From positions 142,214 to 206,213 of the forward strand of contig JALMLS010000081.1 of the NCBI GenBank assembly GCA_038496445.1: a stretch of DNA of 64,000 nt, given 5' to 3'. The position numbers and the translations under genes are program-made. Shown here piece by piece: positions 31,286 through 59,338 of the stretch (position 1 is its first letter; the number at the start of each line of letters is the position of its first letter). Source of the stretch: Trichosphaerium sp. ATCC 40318. Taxonomy: Eukaryota > Protista > Tubulinea. The notes beneath the pieces were generated by a model. The model was not told where the DNA came from. It did no database searches and was given only the letters and a program-made list of their open reading frames with translations.

Positions 31286-33132
31286 ATGGAGGCAGTGACG
31301 GAAGAACAACCTGTACAACAGACCCCAGTTACACAAGAGAATGAAACAGCTGATAATGACACCAAAGTACAAGTTTTTACAGATGAAGTGTCTAAAGTTA
31401 CTGTACGAAGCCTTTACGTAGTTTTGGACTAATAAATGTGCAGATAGCTGTTGAAGGTTGCTGTCATGGAGAACTAGACGCTATTTACAATACAGGTATG
31501 CCACGGCGCATTTTCGTACGTACTAAACCAGCGCTGTGAAGGAAATTGAAGAAAAACATGACAAAAATATTGATTTAGTTCTACTATGCGGGGATGTACA
31601 GGTACTACGATTATATACGTTCACACCAATCCTCCACTCTAACAAAAATCGAGGCTGCGAGAAATCAGGCAGACATGGCTTCGATGGCAATGCCTCCAAC
31701 CTACCGAACTCTAGGAGACTTTCACCAATACTACAAGTAAGTACAAGCATACCACTCCTTTTTTTTCGTTAACAGCTTTCAAAGTGGCGAAAAAAAAGCT
31801 CCATACCTCACAATAATTATTGGTGGCAATCACGAAGCAGCTTTGTACTTTTGGGAGATGTACGCATGTCTACAAGTGTTACAAAAAGAAATTTTTCAAT
31901 GAACCTTCCTTCAACGTTCTCTTCGTATTCACTCTTTTAAGGCCCTTTGGAGGATGGATTGCACCGAATATTTATTACCTAGGATTCGCTGGTGTAGTAA
32001 ACTACGGTGGATTACGTATTATGGGGCTATCTGGGATCTTCAAACATTACAACTACTTTAAAGGTAATATCTCTTTTTTTTGGTGTACTAGCTGCTTGCT
32101 TTCAAGTCTCTCATGTCTATTTGACACAATAAGACCTTATATTATGTATTCAGGTCATTGGGAAGCTCCTCCTTTCACAGATAATCATTTGGTAAAGAAG
32201 AAATCGTATTACCATATTAAAGAATACCAAATATGGAGAATGTCTCTTCTCACTGGAAATTTCGATGTTGCCCTCTCCCATGACTGGCCTACAGGTGTTT
32301 ATAATCATGGTGATAAACAAACACTTCTTCGTATGAAACCATACTTTCGTCAGGAGGTAGGTGGTGTCTCTTATTTTTGATTTCAAAAAAAAAACCACTA
32401 ACTTTTTTGGATCAAAGGTTTATTCAAATAGACTTGGTAATCCACATGGCAAATACCTTTTAGACAAATTACAACCAAAGTATTGGTTTTCTGCTCATTT
32501 ACATGTTAAATTCGCTGCTGTTTGTCCACATACGCATAACAACAAAGAAACAAAGTTTCTTGCTCTTGATAAGTGCTTGCCTGGTAAACATTTCTTACAG
32601 GTAAAACACGCACTTTTCTATTTTTTTTTTTTTATTGCTGTTGTTGACGTTTTTTTGAGGTTGTTGATGTTGATTGCTCATCTGAAGGAGAAAAAAAATT
32701 AACATATGATCCAGAGTGGCTTGCTATTACTAAAATGACGTGGCGGTTCTGGCCATCAAATCATTGGCAGCTGACTGATGAGATGTAAAATCTTTTTCTT
32801 TTTTTTACCTTTTCTAAATTTCAATATTGTAGGAAGGCTATACTTACTGTTGATGATGAGACACTGTCTTGGGTTAAAAAGGAATTTAACGGAAATTATG
32901 AAATTCCTCTTAATTTTGAAAAGACTGCAAGTTTGGACTCAGAAGAGGTTAAATTGGCGCCAATCACTGACTTTACACAAAATCCTCAAACAATGGCGTT
33001 AATGAAGGTAACAAAATTTTTTTACTTTTGACCTTCTTCTCATTCATAGAAACTAACTGTATTTTCAAGCGGCTTGGTATATTTCCTACACCAATAGAAC
33101 CTGAGGCTAACCCTGAGGAGATTGAATTATGA
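31286..33132 (+). CDS. DBR1: RNA lariat debranching enzyme
   Basis: [55 protein letters not shown]; ends ANPEEIEL*(TGA). Confidence 0.96.
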
Positions 33133-33401
33133 TGTACAACCTCTTTTGTAATAAATCAATTGTTTAACCTTCTAATTGTTGCTCACCAATTCAAAAATGA
33201 ATTAAAAAAAGTGACTACGACTCCAGCTGGTGGTTCAATGCTAGGATAATCACTGTGTATGAGAACTGTTTTTCTCCGCTTTTCCCGCTACCAAGACAGG
33301 TGGAACTCACGGAGAGGCTGTAAAACAATGTACTTTGTACGTCACGCGATCGATAGGAGTTATCAAAACGTTTATTTAGTGAGTGTGGTGTCGTGTGTAC
33401 G

Positions 33402-33467
33402 AGAATAATTCTATTTCATGGCGCAAGGCTTCGAAAGAGTTTTCCAAGCGCCTATCATATTTATTCT
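33402..33467 (-). promoter_or_regulatory. SECIS element (form II) of selenoprotein copy 1
   Basis: Minus strand reads AGAAUAA-AU-AUGAU-AGGCGCUUGG-AAAA-CUCUUUCGAAG-CCUUGCGCCA-UGAA-AUAGAA-UUAUUCU: 7-bp helix I, UGAN/NGAN core, GC-rich helix II, apical As and mini-stem; starts 48 nt after the stop. Confidence 0.93.
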
Positions 33468-33514
33468 ACGCAAACAAGAGTATTCACTCGTTGTTTTGAT
33501 TGTCCAGAAGCCAT

Positions 33515-34007
33515 CTATTGAAAATTCGCTTTAATAGCGTTGATGACCTACCATTTGTTATTTTCTACGCTCAAGAACCATGATAGCGTGCCTGTGCATG
33601 GTTTGAAATGTGATGGCCTGTAGATAACTTAGAATAGTAAAGAGTTCCTTTGTGATCTGTTACTTCGAACGAACCACCCCTGGGAGTACTGTTAACCCAA
33701 TCAAAACGGACAATAAAGCTAAAATAGTATTCCAGTTACCTATTTTTCCTTCCCAAAATCGTAGCATCGTTTCCTAGAACGTTGAGGTTTGGAATTGCAG
33801 CTCTAAGCTTTTCTGCAAAAGCTGTAAAAAAAAATCTCGTTAATACGCATGTATTGACCTCTAAACGCTATTTCATACCTAGGTACTGCTTTTTGTAACC
33901 TCACATGGTACTAAAACGCGATTGTAAGTATAAACGGCTACACGGAGGTATATTATGGTTTACCAGTATTCTACGTGTATAAATCTTGCTGCTGCTCTTG
34001 CTGCCAT
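33515..34007 (-). CDS. SELENOW: Selenoprotein W-like (Rdx family), copy 1, 92 aa, Sec encoded by TGA at 33901-33903
   Basis: Exons 34007-33964, 33910-33879, 33821-33740, 33679-33592, 33547-33515 give MAARAAARFIHVEYCTMUGYKKQYLAFAEKLRAAIPNLNVLGNDATILGRKNRGGSFEVTDHKGTLYYSKLSTGHHISNHAQVINAIKANFQ; CxxUGY, GxFEV and YSK motifs; SECIS downstream. Confidence 0.92.
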
Positions 34008-36069
34008 TCTCAATTAGTGATTAAATAATGCTGTCTGGTCGCTAATTTATAGTTACGAATACTTCTGTTGACTTTCCACGGAAGCACCTTTTTTGGAATA
34101 CCCTTCCTAGGAAATGTTGCGCTATTCACGTAAAGTTGCTATTTGAATCACAAGGCATTACTTTGAGTAGAGTCTTTATTGTACATGAGCTTGTAGTCAA
34201 TAACGCCTTGATATTCTAAAAGTGTTTGTACTCCAGATCCAGATATGTGTAATGTCAAACTATCATTATTGCTAAGCGTAATGTATCCACCCGCCATTAA
34301 ACCTGACTCCACAATGTAGATACCATCCAGTTGTTTGAGTATGAGCTCTGGAGATTGAATAAACCATCCCATTTCATCCATGCTGGTTGTGTCTTGTATT
34401 CTAAGTCAGTCGACTTCTACTTAACGATTCGGCGTCTGTACGCTTCCTGCGTGCGTAGGAGATCCAAGTTCGGCTATTTGCAGTACAGAAGTGATGAGCG
34501 AAGCAAAGAAGCCGAAAACTGGGCGAGTTTTATTTGTTAACAGGCACCTCAAATGACAAGGACACTATTCGGGTTTGCCAAACGGAAAATTGTTAATGTC
34601 ACGACAAGAAGGTACGAGGTACGAGTTATAAGTTAAGTCTACTTTATTAGTCTAAGTACAAGTGTATTATTGTGACAACATAGTATCCAAAAAGGTGCTA
34701 CGTTTTTTTCAACGAAACAGTGACGGAAAGAAACGGTCCTAATTTCGGTCTTCCGTGGGGCGTCTACAGGAGTCTTTTGTAGTTAGATGAACACTTTTTA
34801 TGAGCAACTGTATGAGTAAGCAAGACTGGTTTGGAGGGAAGACAAACGTATCAGTGGCTCTAACGCAACACACGAGTAAGTGTTTATATCTTAGAACATA
34901 CATTTAACAAGTGGTATTTATGAAGGAAAAATGGATCCTCAAAGTCAGTTTTCTCAATAAATTCAGTTTTTAGGATCAGAAAAAGTTTATCCTTTTTTCA
35001 AGGGCTTGCCATCAGTTATCTGTGCTTGGCAGTATCTGGTAATCTAAGGATTGTGAGGTTGGTCAAAGTTCCTCAAACGCCTGGAATTCGTGAGAATTTA
35101 CAGCCATATGACAGTTATTTTGACACTTTCTTTTGTACACATGATAAAACGACAGAACCGGTACAACATACTGAAAGTTGCTGGCCGTCTTTACTTAAAT
35201 GTGTACCACGTGGCTTAATGTCGGTAAGAATTGTGATTTAGCCAGTGGCGGAATTCGTTAAGTCATTTTAACAAAATGCTCACTTAATCAGTTTTGATGA
35301 GGTTTAACCGCAATTACCGGGAACGAGAATGCTCGGAAACGGTAGAAACAACGCGTTTATTGCGATTAAGCACATGTTTGCCTTTTTTACCGTGTCACTA
35401 TTTTATTGACACGCAATTACAGCTTGAAAAGCGTTTATTATGTGGTTTGTTACGTAAAAGAAGCTTTCAAACGCTTGTTATCAACGACACGAAAAAATAG
35501 CAAAATTTTCTCGTCGCACAGTGCCGATCCCTGAAGGAGCGGTCCTCATTGGCGAAATAAACGTATCTGGTGAGGGTTTGGAGCTCAAAAGCGCGTGGGC
35601 ACAACTTTTTTTCCAGCGCGAGATACAAAGCATATCTGCGACAAAAGCGCACTTCATAGACCCCGTATCACCAGCGCCCACAAAATTATGAAGACTCGGC
35701 GTTGCTAGCGGGTAGTCAAAGGGCGTAATCTGCAAAATTCCGCTTGCGGAGAAATAATATAACCTCACCCTAATTGTGATTAAGTGTTTAATATTGTAAC
35801 GGACAGTTGTGAAGTATTTGCTAACTAATTTATTATCTTCTATACAAGACTTAGACGTCATCCAAACGTCATATAATCGCTAGATAGCGATATAATCACG
35901 GAGTCTCTCTGAGCACGTGAATACTCTGATAATTCAATGAATCCAATCCTCGAGACTTCTCGTCTAACATATCGTTACAAATATCACCCAGCTAAACGCA
36001 TTTAATCCCCTTCAAGTTCTCCTTTTACTTTATAACATTTGCTCAACGAAAACTAACTGTGATCATACA

Positions 36070-37092
36070 ATGGAAAAGAAAAAACAAAAACAAACCCAGT
36101 TCAACCAAGTATTCGACCTTGTTTCGCTACCAATTGAGTTAATAGTCCATATTCTCAAACAAGGGACATATACACTTCGTACAGCCCAAACGTGCATTCT
36201 TTTACGAGATATAGTTCACAACCATGTTGGGTATGGTCATATCCATATTAAAAACACAAATGAAGTTCAGATGCTTTCTGGTAGCCCATTACTCCACAAT
36301 ACGACTATTGATTTTTTTCGAGAAAAGCCAACAAACGACATTATTGCAGCATTGGCAGGTGTACACACTATCTCCTTGTATGATTGTCAATCAATAACAG
36401 ACAATGGCATTGTGGCATTGGCAGGTGTACACACTATCTCCTTGTATGGTTGTCAATCAATAACAGACAATGGCATTGCGGCATTGGCAGGTGTACACAC
36501 TATCTCCTTGTATGGTTGTCAATCAATAACAGACAATGGCATTGTGGCATTGGCAGGTGTACATGAGATTGATTTAGCACATACAAAAGTAACAGATGAA
36601 GGCATTGCGGCATTGGCAGGTGTACACACTATCTCCTTGTATGGTTGTCAATCAATAACAGACAATGGCATTGCGGCATTGGCAGGTGTATATGAGATTG
36701 ATTTATCACATACAAATGTAACAGATGAAGGCTTGAAGGCATTGGCAGGTGTACATAAGATTGATTTAGCAGGTACAAATGTAACAGATTCAGGTATTGC
36801 AGCATTGGCAGGTGTACATGTGATTAATTTAGCACATACAAATGTAACAGATGAAGGCTTGAAGGCATTGGCAGGTGTACACACTATCTACTTGTATGGT
36901 TGTCAATCAATAACAGACAATGGCATTGCGGCATTGGCAGGTGTACATAAGATTAATTAATCACATACAAATGTAACAGATGAAGGTTTGAAGGCATTGG
37001 CAGGTGTACACACTATCTCCTTGCATGGTTGTAAATCAATAACAGACAATGGCATTGCAGCATTGGCAGGTGTACATGATATTGAGTTTTAA
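36070..37092 (+). CDS. Intronless F-box plus LRR tandem-repeat protein with premature TAA at 36958-36960 (possible pseudogene)
   Basis: LVSLPIELIVHIL F-box; 21-22 aa repeats ALAGVHTISLYGCQSITDNGIA and ALAGVHxIDLxHTNVTDEGLK; repeats continue in frame past the stop to TAA at 37090-37092. Confidence 0.85.
36345..37085 (+). repeat. 63/66-bp coding tandem repeat array (about 11-12 units)
   Basis: Recurrent GCATTGGCAGGTGTACA anchor every 63 or 66 bp. Confidence 0.95.
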
Positions 37093-38894: not shown

Positions 38895-41601
38895 TTACAC
38901 GGAATGAACAAACATCTTAAACTGATATACACCTGTTGCGCTATAGGTTCCATAGCTAAACATAAGGCGTTGAGAATAAGTCCATCCACTGCTTAGTATA
39001 TGTGCTCTTCCTTTTTGGCAAACACTACTAGCGTTTGGAATACGCTCAGGGATAAAGTTGACATTGGGTCCAGAACGCTAAAAGCAACATGAGAAGATGG
39101 CTTGTATCTCCAATACGTATGTAAAACAATGACGTACTTGTATCACTAGCCGTCTGTTTCCAGCACCTGTAAAGCAATTAGGGCTATATGGTACATAAAC
39201 ATCAGCATAAGCTCCGCTTATTGTCTTCAAAGTAACAATCCATTCTAAAAGTTGTTAATTTTATATGTTGACTACCAAAAAGGGTACCTGTGTTTGAGCT
39301 TTGGACGACGTTTGTCAATACAAATTGACTTGCAGATACTGGCGCAATGTTAGGGTACGGATTTGAGGCTGGAGAATGGTAAGATCCCAAGTCATGAACT
39401 GGACCAATGTTCGCTGGCCTAAAGGTAAAGTTAGCATGTGTTGGTGAAATAGACCTGTACGATTTTAGTGTCAGCCAATCTCGGAATGGTCGTTGTGTTC
39501 CACCATGATTAGGGTTGTAAAGACCATAGGTCATCTGTATCATGACAATGTCATTGTCTTTCAACTGGATAGGGTTTGGTAGATCCATACGCAGTTCGTA
39601 GTAGCATTTACCCAAATAGGTAATTGCGCACGGTGGAGGTGTTGTAGGAGGTACAGTTGTGGGCGGAAGAGTGGGTGCAACAGTGGTAGGCGCTACAGTT
39701 GTCGGTGGAAGTGTTGTCGGTGGTAATGTTGTTGGTTGCAGAGTAGTTGGAGGTGAGGTAGTTGGTGGCAACGTTGTTGGTTGAAGTGTTGTTGGAGACG
39801 GAGTTGGAGGTGCTGTTGTTGGCGGGGATGTTGGCACTATAGGAGCTGCTGTTGTGGGTACCACAGTTGGTGCCGGAGTAGGACATTGTGACTTGGAGTA
39901 AAAGAGTCTGTCTTCTGGGATAACTTGACGACCTGCTCGTGGTACATACCACTCAAGTTTAATATTACCATCACCTTCGTGGTCGTAGTATTCAACAGTA
40001 ATTGGATAGTGCAAGTCTTTTACCAGGTGATATCCAAAGTACTTCATGCCAGTTGCCCCAGATCCCCATCTTACAAAAAATATCAGTAAGAGATCGCAAT
40101 AGATTATGACAAATCGTACTCAATAATCTTCGATCTGGTTGCAAAGTATAGCCTCACACCATCGTCTGCGTTGACAACAAAATAAAATGTTCCTGTAACT
40201 GGTGCTTTGACATATCCCTTAAGGGTACATCAGATGTCTTCACAAACATGGATAATGTACACGTACAGTCCATCGAACAGATATCTTACTTGAGGGAAGA
40301 TCCTGAGGAGTGCCAGCCGACCAATCGATATTTACAGTAGGATCAGCTTGAGGTTTAAGAATATTTTCAAACGCTGATTGAGTAGGTATGTGTGGGTTTC
40401 CAGTATACTCAAAGTACTCTGCTAAGAGACCTTTTCTATGATATCCTCCGTTGCAAACTAAACTGCTATTAATATGAATGCTTTATAATAGGCAAGGATG
40501 GATACCTGAAGGTGTTGGTCGGCACTTTCTTACTGAGAAACCAAACATTCCTGTACTTCCAAACATGTTCGCTGAACATCCTCTTGTAGGATACTGCTCA
40601 CGAAAAGCTGTTTCCATCCAAGACTGACCTATAGTATCACGTTAGCACAATTTATTTCAGGTGGTAAGTACGTACCGTTGCAGTGATTGTTAGGGCAGTC
40701 AGCGCAAATGCCACCAAAAGCAGTTTCTGTATATCCTATAATAATCAAGTTAGCTAAACATAAAAGTACGGTAAACTCTCTAACTCACCAGTGGGACACT
40801 CTGGAGGCCAGCCAACATCGGAGCAATAATGGAGTCTACATTGACCATATCTAGCAAAGCCTATTTGGAACACAGCATCTAAAAAACTCTATAATTAGCC
40901 GAAACATAAACTGTAAAGTAAAAAGTGAATACCATAGCATAGCGCATTGTCTGACCAAAAAGTGCCTTCTTCAGGCGTAGCATCCCAAGATACACAAGTC
41001 CAATCTACAAAACAGTAAACGCGATGATACAAGCACGTGCTGTACCTGCAGGGTGGGTAGCGTCATTGACAAATTTGAAGTTCATATCAATTGATGTTTC
41101 CCAACACAAAAAGTTGTTTTGCCACGAATCCGGGTCTAGTGGCTCATACAACCTTTCACACGATTTACCAGAAACTGGACCTTGCGTGCTGAACTCAAAG
41201 GCACCTAAATATACAATCAGGCTACATTTATAGTGCAAAGTGAAGGACGTACTTGCGTCGCCTGTGTGTTCAGTCCAACACCAATAATTGTCACTCCAGG
41301 AAGTTGCGGGAGGTTCGTTTGGATCGTCCAATGATAAACAGTGCATGTTGGCCACAGGTCCGCTTGTAGAGAACGCATACATCGGATTACTACCAAGAGC
41401 TTCAGAGTTCCGCTTTACAATAGTAGACGAACTCGTTTGTAGAGCACCTTGAGTTGTGTTAGTAAAGTACTTATGTTGCTTTCGTGAGGGCCTACATGAA
41501 GTAGTTGTAACCAAAATTGCAAAGAGAAAAAGGTAAGGCTACGAAGGATTTAGTTGTTGGGTATTTGTTACTAGTAGTAGCATGTTTACGTAAGTTGCCA
41601 T
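38895..41601 (-). CDS. Secreted PA14-domain protein with N-terminal Cys/Trp repeats and a Pro/Thr linker
   Basis: GLLAEYF...SVRWTGYVKAPVTGTFYFVVNADDGVRL...YPITVEYYDHEGDGNIKLEW...IPEDRLF (PA14); PTTLPPTT repeats; WSDNYWC and WQNNFLC repeats. Confidence 0.85.
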
Positions 41602-52502: not shown

Positions 52503-53333
52503 TTATTTACATTTAGATAGAGATATATGGTAATGACAGTGAACGTCAACATGTCCGTGCATATCCATTCTTTTAAACTCTCCTTGTATCCTACCACATA
52601 TCCAGTAACAAGTTATGTTTGATTGTCCATTAGAATGCCATGTTTCGTACTTATACTCTCTCTTTCCTTTTATATAATAGCAATCCTTCTCTAATTGTCC
52701 GTTGTGATACCATTCAAGGCACTTTCCGTCTAACAAGTCTTTTTTATAGAAACACTTTGTCTTTATCTTTCCGTTCTTGTGCCACTCTTCAAACAATCCA
52801 TCTCGTTTTCCTTTCTTATAAAAACAAGTCGCTTTCTTCATACCATTCGCTCTAAACTGCTTCGCTTCACCTTCCTTCAGTCCTTTCTTAAAAACGCAGT
52901 CGAGCTTCAATCTACCATCTGGACGCCAGTGCCTCGCCCTTCCTTCCTTGACACCTTTTCGAAAATAGCAGAGAAGTTTTAGTTGTCCGTTTTTGTGCCA
53001 CTCCTTGTACTTTCCTTCTCGCCTCAGCGTGTCAGTATCAATAAACCAAAGGCTTTTTATTTGGCCTCTTCGATAGTAAGTTCTATGTTCGCCGTCGCAT
53101 CTGTTCCAGATAGCATGAACGCTACCGCACTTGTAGAAGGTCTTCCAAGTACCTGCTGGTCTGAGCGACGTATCGTATCGCGTCATCATAGCAGCTTTCT
53201 TTGAAATTAGAGGCCATAGTTTATAGAGCTCTGTGTCGGTACTAGCGATACGTTGTTGAAGTTCTGGAGGCAAGGATACAAGCGCTAGTGGGAACGCTTT
53301 TGCCTTGTCTGTTGTGTGATATGTGCCATTCAA
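52503..53333 (-). CDS. Intronless F-box-like plus MORN-variant (YwqK-type) repeat protein; no in-frame ATG ahead of the F-box
   Basis: LVSLPPELQQRI; 24-aa repeats such as EGKYKEWHKNGQLKLLCYFRKG; TATA-like TATAAATA at about 53375-53382 on the minus strand. Confidence 0.8.
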   Translation of the reverse strand: MNGTYHTTDKAKAFPLALVSLPPELQQRIASTDTELYKLWPLISKKAAMMTRYDTSLRPAGTWKTFYKCGSVHAIWNRCDGEHRTYYRRGQIKSLWFIDTDTLRREGKYKEWHKNGQLKLLCYFRKGVKEGRARHWRPDGRLKLDCVFKKGLKEGEAKQFRANGMKKATCFYKKGKRDGLFEEWHKNGKIKTKCFYKKDLLDGKCLEWYHNGQLEKDCYYIKGKREYKYETWHSNGQSNITCYWICGRIQGEFKRMDMHGHVDVHCHYHISLSKCK

Positions 53334-55436: not shown

Positions 55437-55502
55437 AGAATAATTCTATTTCATGGCGCAAGGCTTCGAAAGAGTTTTCCAAGCGCCTATCATATTTATT
55501 CT
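55437..55502 (-). promoter_or_regulatory. SECIS element (form II) of selenoprotein copy 2
   Basis: Identical by eye to 33402-33467, with the same helix I, GA quartet, helix II and apical As. Confidence 0.93.
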
Positions 55503-55550: not shown

Positions 55551-56034
55551 CTATTGAAAATTCGCTTTAATAGCGTTGATGACCTACCATTTGTTAGTTT
55601 TATGCTTAAGAACCATGATGGCGTGCCGGCGCGTGGTTTTTCATGTGATGGCCCGTAGATAACTTAGAATAGTAAAGATTTCCCTTGTGGTCCATCACCT
55701 CGAATGCTCCTTCTCTAAAGACATAATTAAAAAGGACAATAAAGCAAATTAGAATTAATTACCTTGGTTTTCCACCTAAAATCGTTGGATGGTTACCTGC
55801 AATAGCAAGCTTTGGCATAGCGGCTTGAAGCGCATGTGCGAAAGCTTTGGAGGAAAAAATGTCAGAAAGTCGTTTTCATCCACTAAACGCTGGTAACATA
55901 CCTTGAAATTGCCGGTTGTAACCTCACCCGGTACTAAAACACGATTGTAAGTATAAACGACTTCATCGAGCTCTAAGTGTGGCTTACCAGTATTCTATGT
56001 GTACCCATTCGTATGCTGCTTCTTTTGCTGCCAT
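55551..56034 (-). CDS. SELENOW: Selenoprotein W-like (Rdx family), copy 2, 93 aa, Sec encoded by TGA at 55924-55926
   Basis: Exons 56034-55988, 55933-55902, 55844-55763, 55714-55627, 55583-55551 give MAAKEAAYEWVHIEYCTGUGYNRQFQAFAHALQAAMPKLAIAGNHPTILGGKPREGAFEVMDHKGNLYYSKLSTGHHMKNHAPVINAIKANFQ. Confidence 0.92.
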
Positions 56035-56351: not shown

Positions 56352-59338
56352 TCACACAAATTGATTTGTCTTCATGATCATAGATACGACATTTCCTGTC
56401 TTTGAGAAACCTAGTTGAAAAGTTAAAATGGCTCTAATAACAGTGGTGTCAACGCACAATTTTAGACTCCGCATAACTGATTTACTGTATGCTCCATGTA
56501 TACAAACAGTTTCTAGCGATGGCGACATACCAACAAACTTCTCAAAAGCATCTGAACTAACTTGTGAACCTAGTATAGGTTCAAATCTTTCCATTGTTGG
56601 AACTACAGCAATGTTAACAAAATCTTTTTACTTAGAAAAAAGCAACGCACATTTAAGACCATCTAGGGATTTCCACGACATCTCTACGATAAGAGTGCTA
56701 AAACTACAACAAACCGAATTAGTAAATAGGTCCAGTTAATTTGCTTACTCCTTTGATGGATGTGCATTCTTGAACGGAGCACAGACGGTGTCTTTCAGGT
56801 GCAGTTGTTGTAGTGATTTCATTGAAAGTATTACATTCCTAACAGCTTTGCCATCTGTATAGTGCGATAACTTCAAGTTTGATATCAAACTACACTTTTC
56901 TACAATAATGCTCAATAATAGAAACAAATTATCAAGTTGAATTAAAAAACTGTATGCCTACCTGCAATTGTTTTCAAATGAATTGAGGAAACAATATATG
57001 ACGATACATCAAGTTCGCACAAGTGTTGGAATGAAACATCACAACTGAGGAATATTCTGTTTGGAATTGAAGTTTTCGGAATTATGAGCTAAATGGTAGG
57101 TTAGTGTAAATAGCAAAAGAAAGCTCATTAGGGAAACCATACCCGTAATTTCTTTAGTAATGTAAATTTCTGTTCTATGAGGCGCCTGCATTCCTCTACC
57201 TCATCCTTGTTTTGAAACGCAGCAAGAATAATATCCACCTCTTTTAAATCACACGGAATCCTACAACAGTTAACTTTCACTTATGTCATATTTATATAAG
57301 CTAGCTCACATTTCCAGAAGGGGTAATAGAGTACTAGTTCCCAGCTTGATAGTCAAGCGTTTAAGTTGCAAACAAAAAGGCTCTGTAAATAAAAACCCTG
57401 TGTTAGTAACAATCCAACAACACAACATGACTTACTTGGGCTTTTATCCGTATTTACTAACTCTAAAGGTACAAAAGTCAGTATAGTATATTGAGTGGGA
57501 ATTAAAAGTACCCTTTGCATCTATCTTTAAGTACGAAATATTTGGTACTTTTCTTAACAGCTTAAGGTCAAATGTATTTTCAGGGACCATAGGATTGACA
57601 TGGTCATAAACAAATAATTGGCTGAGCATCGGCATTGGATCAATCGCAGAAAGGTCTGAATTTGATATAGACAGTTTTTTGCAAGTCTTGACGTTGATCA
57701 AGTCCATCAAGGGCAATTTAATATTCAAGGCACAGTTTGACCACAGACTCTATAGTAACAATGATGATAAGCAATGGTTGATAACAATTGCGAGGTGTAC
57801 TTCAAATGTCAGTTGAATTGCACCAAATTCGTGATTCATTGCATAGCAAGAAGAATCAAAGAACAATTCTTTGAGGTTCGGAAACCATGAATGCAAAACT
57901 TTATGAGCGTTAGCCCAATTGAAGCCACTAACATCAAGTGCCACCAATGAAGGCAGACACAGTGGATCAAAGTCTTTTTTTGATAGCTTTTTGGAACGTT
58001 TGGGCATCCTAGGATAAAGATAAGCAGCTTTACGATGTTGATTAGATGGTACTAACCCAAGTTTAACAAGAGAAGTTTGCCTAGATATTTGTACGAATAA
58101 AGAACGAACTGTATCTACTTCCCAGTCTCTGGCATCAATACCAGACAAGTTCAAATGTGTAAGTTTTTCACATTTACTTATTGCCGAAATGATATATTCA
58201 GGCTTTAACCAGCCGCAACCACTAAGTCTAAAGTAGAATGAGTATCTTCGAATAAGAAAAAGTCTGGAACCAGTTTGAGGTTTATCATGATGTTTGTTGT
58301 AGTACCTTAGCGTTTGAACCATATCGGAGCATTCTGTAATCTTACTCAATAAAACTAAGTCTGTTATCCAACAGCTATAATAAGACAAACTATTAGTGCT
58401 TGAAAAACTATGAAAGATCTTCAAATGATTTGAGACTTGCGTAATTTTCAGAACAAATCCCGGTTGCTCAATAGAGCTACGAAAGGCCTATTACGCTCTA
58501 AATAGCGTCAAACCACATTCCGGCACTGTCATTTTGATTGGTAGCCAGTTTTTTTCTCGTTTTGAAATAAAATCACGTGCGCGCGTAATCTGGTGTTTGT
58601 TTTAGCGATTTACATCACGCAGCTTTTTTGGAGTAAAACAAAAGTAATAATCGAAAAAAAGTGGCTACCAATCAAAATGACAGTCTCAGAATGTGGTTTG
58701 ACGCTGTTTAGAGCGTACTAGGCCATTCGTAGCTCTATTGAGCAACCGGGTTTTGTATTGGCAATTACGGCTTTCAAATACAAACCAATACATACTTATC
58801 TAATTCAATGGTTCTGCCAAATGCAAATTGTGCTGCTTGTTTCCAATGGAGACACACTTGACTTAAATGGCGTCTTTGGAATTTTGTCAAATGCTCAAAA
58901 ATCATAACCACAATCTCCGTTGGCATATCTCCAAAGTTGCATAGCTTTACCGCGTCTTCGTCACATACCTTTACAAGGGAATTAAAACAAGTAAAAACAT
59001 TTTTAAGGTGACAGGAAACCTTCATACCGCTTGGTATAAATCCCGCTCTAATTTTCTTAAACCCTGCTGCATCGTTCCAAAGATCGAGTTAAAGTTGCTT
59101 ATCTCCGACTAAAGGCGACGATTATTTGTGTCGGGTGTGTATAAACCAATAGCATACCGATTCATTAATCAAGTCCTTGTTTGTTTCCAAAAGACTCTGT
59201 AATTGCCTTACAAACGCTAGTCGATCACTGTCGCGTATATTGTTGCGTGTTGTATTTGACTTGGTACGTTTTCTGGGAGAGATAGTCTAAAACCGTTTTA
59301 GATGAATAGATGATATTAACAAGTACTTTTAGTGACAT
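56352..59338 (-). CDS. F-box plus degenerate LRR protein, spliced
   Basis: FGDMPTEIVVMIFEHL...LSQVCLHWK F-box; LRR-like CEKLTHLNLSG, LPSLVALDVSG, FPNLKELFF; both ends approximate. Confidence 0.7.
58440..58769. mobile_element. MITE/foldback-like element with about 100-120 bp terminal inverted repeats
   Basis: 58459-58556 (CCCGGTTGCTCAATAGAGCTACGAA...GGTAGCCAGTTTTTTTC) is the reverse complement of 58653-58750 with few mismatches; degenerate extension out to CGTAATT/AATTACG; no ORF. Confidence 0.8.

Follow-up and report, generated by a model that had tools for sequence, protein, structure and literature searches.

Proteins of the Rdx family, to which SelW belongs, carry a tGxFEI(V) motif in their C-terminal half (PMC10650576). 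Mammalian SelW is known to bind glutathione and 14-3-3 proteins, its exact functions being unknown (PMC10650576). In eukaryotes, selenocysteine (Sec) is inserted at UGA codons through a SECIS element, via which SBP2 and eEFSec act (PMC7539508); one described form of SECIS has a UGAN/KGAW core with apical adenines (PMC3753652). Among amoebae, Sec use has been verified by 75Se in Dictyostelium, where five selenoproteins are listed and SelW is absent from the list (PMC2375036). Sec use is also predicted in Acanthamoeba, and SelW is present in most Sec-using eukaryotes (PMC2375036, PMC8038987). The published Trichosphaerium genome has 37.7% GC and a mean intron length of 75 nt, and selenoproteins are not mentioned in the paper or its supplements (PMC10521059). 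We analyzed one stretch of 64,000 nucleotides from this organism (hereafter, the window), in which GC varies between 35 and 46% in 2-kb bins and introns are 43–60 nt long, values compatible with those of the published genome. Here we describe a SelW-like gene on its minus strand (copy A) and a paralog of that gene (copy B).

Gene structure and transcripts

No open reading frame had been called at the copy A locus. The earlier note, made from the letters alone, had proposed a minus-strand gene of five exons for a 92-residue protein, containing EYCTM-TGA-GY with the Cys codon divided by intron 1, followed by GGSFEV and YYSK. This model was borne out: the five exons join to 92 codons and a TAG, every one of these motifs is present in the spliced frame, and all four introns were found spliced in RNA contigs that keep the TGA-bearing exon 2 (Table 1). 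The contigs come from three public runs of three studies, in which 11–20% of the words from the 5-kb region are present; the RNA status of the runs was guessed, and splicing is seen in their contigs. X1, within a single 291-nt contig, and X2 each contain the four joints (53, 57, 60 and 44 nt), while X3 showed splicing of introns 1 and 2 and X5 of introns 2 and 3; the joints of introns 1–4 were thus all seen in contigs of two studies. One X3 contig has a loose end at 34022 which we take to be the SMART template-switch oligo, marking the 5' end of the cDNA about 15 nt upstream of the ATG. The 60-nt intron 3 fixes the product at 92 residues, and a 95-residue model using an in-frame intron 3 acceptor at 33689 was rejected because the contig joints use 33680. 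The unused acceptor (33688–33680) would add S-T-P to give a family-like P-R-G-G-S-F-E-V and is absent from the contigs. According to a frame check, skipping of exon 2 or retention of any of introns 1–3 would create premature stops; no such forms were found among the contigs of the runs, although contigs cannot prove absence. Copy A is a genuine gene of five exons that is expressed and encodes a small, predicted redox protein.

Table 1. Positions of copy A, copy B and neighboring features in the window.
Feature	Position	Strand	Evidence
Copy A, 5' UTR, ~15 nt	34008..34022	-	X3 contig 5' end at 34022
Copy A, exon 1: ATG, 14 codons + TG of Cys codon	33964..34007	-	frame check and contigs
Copy A, intron 1, 53 nt, GT-AG, interrupts Cys codon (TG/T)	33911..33963	-	joint in X1, X2, X3
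Copy A, exon 2, encodes C-T-M-U-G-Y	33879..33910	-	frame check and contigs
In-frame TGA, codon 18, predicted selenocysteine	33901..33903	-	frame check, contigs, paralog, homologues L001, L002, L004
Copy A, intron 2, 57 nt, GT-AG	33822..33878	-	joint in X1, X2, X3, X5
Copy A, exon 3, predicted helix 1 + strand 2 region	33740..33821	-	frame check and contigs; structure from homologue model
Copy A, intron 3, 60 nt, GT-AG, distal of 2 in-frame acceptors used	33680..33739	-	joint 'skips 60' in X1, X2, X5
Copy A, exon 4, motifs GxFEV and YYSK..TG-H	33592..33679	-	TIGR02174 E 0.071; P0001 66% identity, E 1.4e-4
Copy A, intron 4, 44 nt, GC-AG	33548..33591	-	joint 'skips 44' in X1, X2; GC donor also in paralog
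Copy A, exon 5 coding part, 10 codons + TAG	33515..33547	-	frame check and contigs
SECIS-like element with AUGA (33458) and 3' UGAA (33418-33415) in the core, AAAA (33443-33440) at the apex	33402..33467	-	fold and geometry scan; paralog copy identical
AATAAA 3' of SECIS, candidate poly(A) signal (putative function)	33371..33376	-	
200-bp tract, no substitutions and two 1-nt indels vs paralog; probably gene conversion	33361..33560	-	sequence comparison
Copy B coding, 93 codons (exons 56034-55988, 55933-55902, 55844-55763, 55714-55627, 55583-55551)	55551..56034	-	
Copy B SECIS, matches copy A at 66 of 66 positions	55437..55502	-	sequence comparison; X5 contig
DBR1; splicing of its five 3' introns seen in RNA contigs	31943-33132	+	Pfam DBR1
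Intronless F-box-like + tandem LRR ORF; near-identical repeats, multiples of ~65 nt	36070-37090	+	
ORF: PA14 domain piece, then Pro/Thr-rich mucin-like stretch	39202-40047	-	PA14 E 0.013
Intronless 276-aa ORF; repeats resemble MORN2/YwqK-type of giant viruses, bacteria	52503-53333	-	by eye
330-bp imperfect inverted repeat, 75% self-complementary; possibly MITE or foldback element	58440-58769		

Several observations concern the surroundings of the gene. DBR1 converges on it, and the DBR1 contigs end near 33170, about 200 nt from the candidate poly(A) signal. At 34824–34970, X1 and X3 contigs reach depths of up to 309 and show numerous indels and long loose ends; they derive from a repeat or from a relative of an abundant transcript. 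No tRNA genes were found within the 64 kb. Within the window, the 11-mer TTTACGTGAAT is found at two sites only, 34134–34124 and 56139–56129 on the minus strand. These precede the ATGs of copies A and B by about 120 and 100 nt, in surrounding DNA that is 52% identical, and the 11-mer is a candidate promoter element common to the two genes.

The 3' hairpin and the second gene copy

The earlier note had also placed a canonical SECIS 48 nt past the stop codon. A hairpin does begin at that distance. Its helix I (AGAAUAA/UUAUUCU) has 7 bp and can be extended to 11, its core is AUGAU (33458–33454) opposite UGAA (33418–33415), helix II comprises 10 nt (seven pairs, two U.U and one A.A), and the apical AAAA lies 11 nt past the UGA of the core. 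The UGAU/UGAA core, the AAAA and helix II fit the UGAN/KGAW pattern. While helix I, the core and the apical adenines were all found as described, the mini-stem proved marginal (2–3 bp, 0 to 1.7 kcal/mol above an open loop), and the Rfam SECIS models, applied to 2 kb and to 131 nt with a threshold of E<=10, gave chance matches and no SECIS match. The folding z-score was -1.8 to -2.5. A strong SECIS-geometry filter retained two sites in 128 kb, the copy A element and a twin at 55502–55437 (site at 55493). In shuffled controls (n=40) the same filter retained 0.175 sites per 128 kb (about 3e-4 per 200 nt), a chance figure that is optimistic since the thresholds were set after the element had been seen, a stricter first version having missed it; a loose pattern was found about 5 times per 128 kb of shuffled sequence. 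Because the thresholds are post hoc, the location and conservation of the hairpin weigh more than its shape.

The twin belongs to copy B (56034–55437), which lies 22 kb from copy A and was found by a tblastn search of the unspliced window with the environmental homologue L001 (see below). Copy B has the motif C-T-G-U-G-Y, with its TGA at 55926–55924, and keeps all four intron positions including the GC donor of intron 4; 62 of 92 residues are identical between the two proteins. Its expression is evident from contigs of the divergent exon 4 and from the exon 4/5 junction in X2 and X5. Judged from the coding sequences (dS of about 0.96), the duplication is old, and introns 2 and 3 are 62–65% identical between the copies. 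The 5' ends have a pattern of their own across exon 1 and intron 1 (34007–33911 against 56034–55934): the 10 differences in exon 1 are all non-synonymous, none being synonymous, and the 80% identity of intron 1 exceeds that of introns 2 and 3. An earlier conversion at the 5' end may lie behind this or, with 11 sites, chance.

The 3' ends are free of substitutions over 200 bp. This tract (33560–33361) runs from the end of intron 4 through exon 5, a 47-nt spacer and the SECIS to 40 nt further. By simple arithmetic, a perfect 47-nt spacer would arise by chance with a probability of about 2e-9 to 3e-5 at a background identity of 65–80%. Both flanks are diverged yet homologous (intron 4, 89%; distal UTR, 79%), and in RNA contigs the exon 4 specific to either copy is followed by the identical exon 5 sequence. 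From these two observations, gene conversion is the best reading, and the 3' ends of the two copies were most likely homogenized recently in this way, the UTR of copy A being known from the assembly alone. An artefact of assembly or polishing might also have produced identical ends: the published Trichosphaerium assembly, if it is the one used here, is based on long reads, Pilon-polished and haplotype-reduced (PMC10521059), and the UTR of copy A past about 33508 is covered by no read set. We consider this unlikely, since independent RNA contigs tie A-specific and B-specific exon 4 to one exon 5 sequence and since diverged homologous sequence bounds the tract on both sides; extreme selection, the other way to identity short of conversion, would leave unexplained why identity extends to the 47-nt spacer and to exon 5 at its synonymous sites, as selection on the SECIS does not account for them. 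The pair offers a natural example of an identical SECIS serving two coding regions that have diverged. A literature search found no report of SECIS gene conversion. At each of the two indels between the tracts, 33469 and 33398, copy A has a single letter where copy B has a doublet, and both may result from errors in the assembly.

A second AATAAA, in addition to the candidate poly(A) signal, lies within the 5' arm of helix I in both copies (33465–33460 and 55500–55495, minus strand). Polyadenylation directed by it would deprive the mRNA of the SECIS. At least some copy B transcripts extend past it: an X5 contig over the SECIS bears the two diagnostic insertions of copy B together with its flank. 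The copy A contig stops near 33508, and no single contig links the copy A coding region to the SECIS. The alignment of the X5 contig over 33361–33503 had been a candidate for a copy A mRNA with SECIS; it was rejected because its two insertions and loose end point to copy B.

Family membership and decoding of the in-frame TGA

Database searches were run exon by exon, the joined read-through protein serving in local frame and copy comparisons only. Among 18950 models, exon 4 matched only TIGR02174 (SelT/SelW/SelH), at E 0.071 and 13.4 bits, below the curated cut-off; exon 4 of copy B matched the same model at E 0.065. Neither Pfam nor the PDB sequences, mouse SelW among them, gave a match to exon 3 or exon 4. 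Against 1.84 billion representative proteins, exon 4 hit the protein P0001 (E 1.4e-4, 66% identity). The contig of P0001, L001, and a second contig, L002, hold intronless environmental homologues with a TGA at the equivalent codon, reading M-K-F/Y-H-I-E-Y-C-T-A-TGA-G-Y ... G-A-F-E-I ... Y-Y-S-K-L-E-T-G-S-H-I; both genes had been mis-called to start 3' of the TGA. The post-TGA fragment of L001, which lacks the CxxU, scored E 1.8e-7 with TIGR02174 (31.3 bits against a cut-off of 34.2) and E 3.5e-4 with Pfam Rdx (21.2 bits against 22.6). A model of this fragment (pLDDT 74) has a helix, three strands and a helix, strand 1 being missing from the fragment. Its best PDB match with Foldseek was mouse SelW, weakly (E 0.32, TM 0.55), and its best Atlas match, also weak, was an Rdx cluster; VIA gave a Z of 4.2–4.3 among tied rows, not top-ranked. 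When compared with L001, exon 4 beat 2000 of 2000 shuffles and exon 2 all but 6 of 2000, and exons 1, 3 and 5 were individually marginal or not significant, yet in the correct order. A bacterial Rdx gene (L004, protein P0004) also has a TGA, in I-E-Y-C-A-V-TGA-H-Y, and has YSKLETGSHI in common with L001 and L002. Two other candidates were discarded: P0002 was a repetitive chance match and L003 a wrong-strand false match.

The family's motifs are in place in the spliced frame, with CxxU near the N-terminus (C15-T-M-U18, from RNA-confirmed splicing) and GxFE as GGSFEV in copy A and EGAFEV in copy B. Together with SK, the exon 4 match to TIGR02174 and the homologue-level matches, they uphold the assignment to the Rdx family that the earlier note had made. 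Copies A and B are members of the known Rdx/SelW-like family and call for no new mechanism or family. Since no relatives were found in GTDB genomes or viral contigs, a bacterial or viral origin by gene transfer is unsupported. The 3' UTRs of L001 (358–409) and L002 (909–960) have a near-identical 49-nt element within otherwise diverged surroundings; it has an AUGAU/UGAG kink-turn-like core, a helix I and a mini-stem, is without apical AA or CC, and is a candidate non-canonical SECIS. We lean slightly towards a wider reading, in which copy A falls in an unnamed protist SelW-like branch (YYSKLxTGxH), overlooked since gene callers start past the TGA, in which two paralogs homogenized by conversion over the last exon, 3' UTR and SECIS share one recoding signal, and in which L001 and L002 perhaps use a SECIS without apical adenines.

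The sole internal TGA of copy A is codon 18 (33903–33901), in the context V-E-Y-C15-T-M-TGA18-G-Y, and no differing letter is listed there in any of the X1, X2 and X3 contigs. The same TGA is shared by copy B, L001, L002 and the bacterial L004, and is retained between A and B although the preceding codon differs (ATG and GGG). Past it, over codons 19–82, A and B differ with dN 0.25 and dS 0.96 (ratio 0.27, Fisher p 8e-5), and for exon 4 only the ratio is 0.15. The post-TGA frame has thus been selected as protein, which requires read-through. Through dN/dS across the stop, the paralog pair itself proves UGA recoding in an unusually clean way.

Read-through need not imply Sec. The UGA might be decoded as Cys or Trp by leaky near-cognate reading or be reassigned genome-wide, the hairpin being incidental, and in favor of this the UGA is followed by a G. 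This we regard as very improbable. The earlier note had taken TGA for an ordinary stop in DBR1, rightly: spliced with its RNA-defined introns, DBR1 has 289 codons, 10 TGG and 3 Cys codons, and TGA solely as its terminal stop (33130), which indicates, from the one gene examined, that recoding at the selenoprotein gene is local. Two long ORFs in the window likewise use TGG and TGY normally. Moreover, the codon of the catalytic residue is TGA in four further sequences, one of them bacterial, and a hairpin with a canonical core is present in both 3' UTRs. That copy A is a transcribed pseudogene or the source of a 17-residue peptide, with the TGA a nonsense mutation, is scarcely credible: its SECIS is supported by the assembly alone, but purifying selection acts past the TGA, frame and splice sites are intact in both copies, and distant homologues have the same TGA.

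We are therefore highly confident that copy A is a spliced and expressed SelW-like Rdx gene whose UGA18 is read as Sec by means of its 3' UTR SECIS, that its product most likely acts as a redox protein, and that it has an old, expressed duplicate, the two 3' ends having been homogenized most likely by conversion. Decoding of the internal stop as selenocysteine is almost certain, Sec insertion itself being inferred, as is the active Sec system that the earlier note had proposed for this protist. In the proposed mechanism, splicing would yield an mRNA with the UGA at codon 18 and the SECIS in its 3' UTR; SBP2 would bind the SECIS and eEFSec would bring Sec-tRNA, as in the standard eukaryotic route, for the UGA to be decoded. 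The product would carry its CxxU after the first strand of a predicted minimal thioredoxin-like fold. By analogy with its family, it is most likely a soluble, presumably cytosolic thiol/selenol oxidoreductase that would cycle through a Cys15–Sec18 selenenylsulfide.

Comparison with known selenoproteins

Copies A and B add SelW-like proteins to the selenoproteome of this amoeba, and their description would correct the annotation of two small genes. Like SELENOW/SelW (Rdx, PF10262, TIGR02174), copy A has about 90 residues, an N-terminal CxxU followed by GY, then GxFEV and S-K, and a 3' UTR SECIS. Unlike SelW, it has T-G-H-H after YYSKL and is too divergent for a direct sequence match to the mouse protein. 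This TGxH pattern is common to copy A, L001, L002 and the bacterial L004. The CxxU/C and GxFE motifs are also those of SelT, SelH, SelV and Rdx12/MIEN1. By inspection, however, copy A is without the long N-terminal extension of SelV, the RKRK nuclear motif of SelH, and an obvious signal peptide or the hydrophobic insert of SelT, and it differs from Rdx12 in having Sec in place of Cys and no C-terminal CAAX.

The bacterial SelT/SelW/SelH proteins (P0004/L004; NF041051) resemble copy A in IEYCxxU, GxFEV and YSKLxTGxHI, with 15 of 24 residues identical over exon 4. The similarity is weak (profile E 0.099), and the bacterial genes are intronless, whereas copy A is interrupted by four introns and carries a SECIS of eukaryotic type in its 3' UTR. 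In bacterial selenoprotein genes the SECIS lies directly after the UGA. As two linked, Sec-containing SelW-like paralogs, A and B recall the tandem duplicates SelW2a and SelW2b of zebrafish (PMC3316567). Unlike that pair, they lie at a distance of 22 kb and have in common a 3' tract of 200 bp, SECIS included, without a single substitution.
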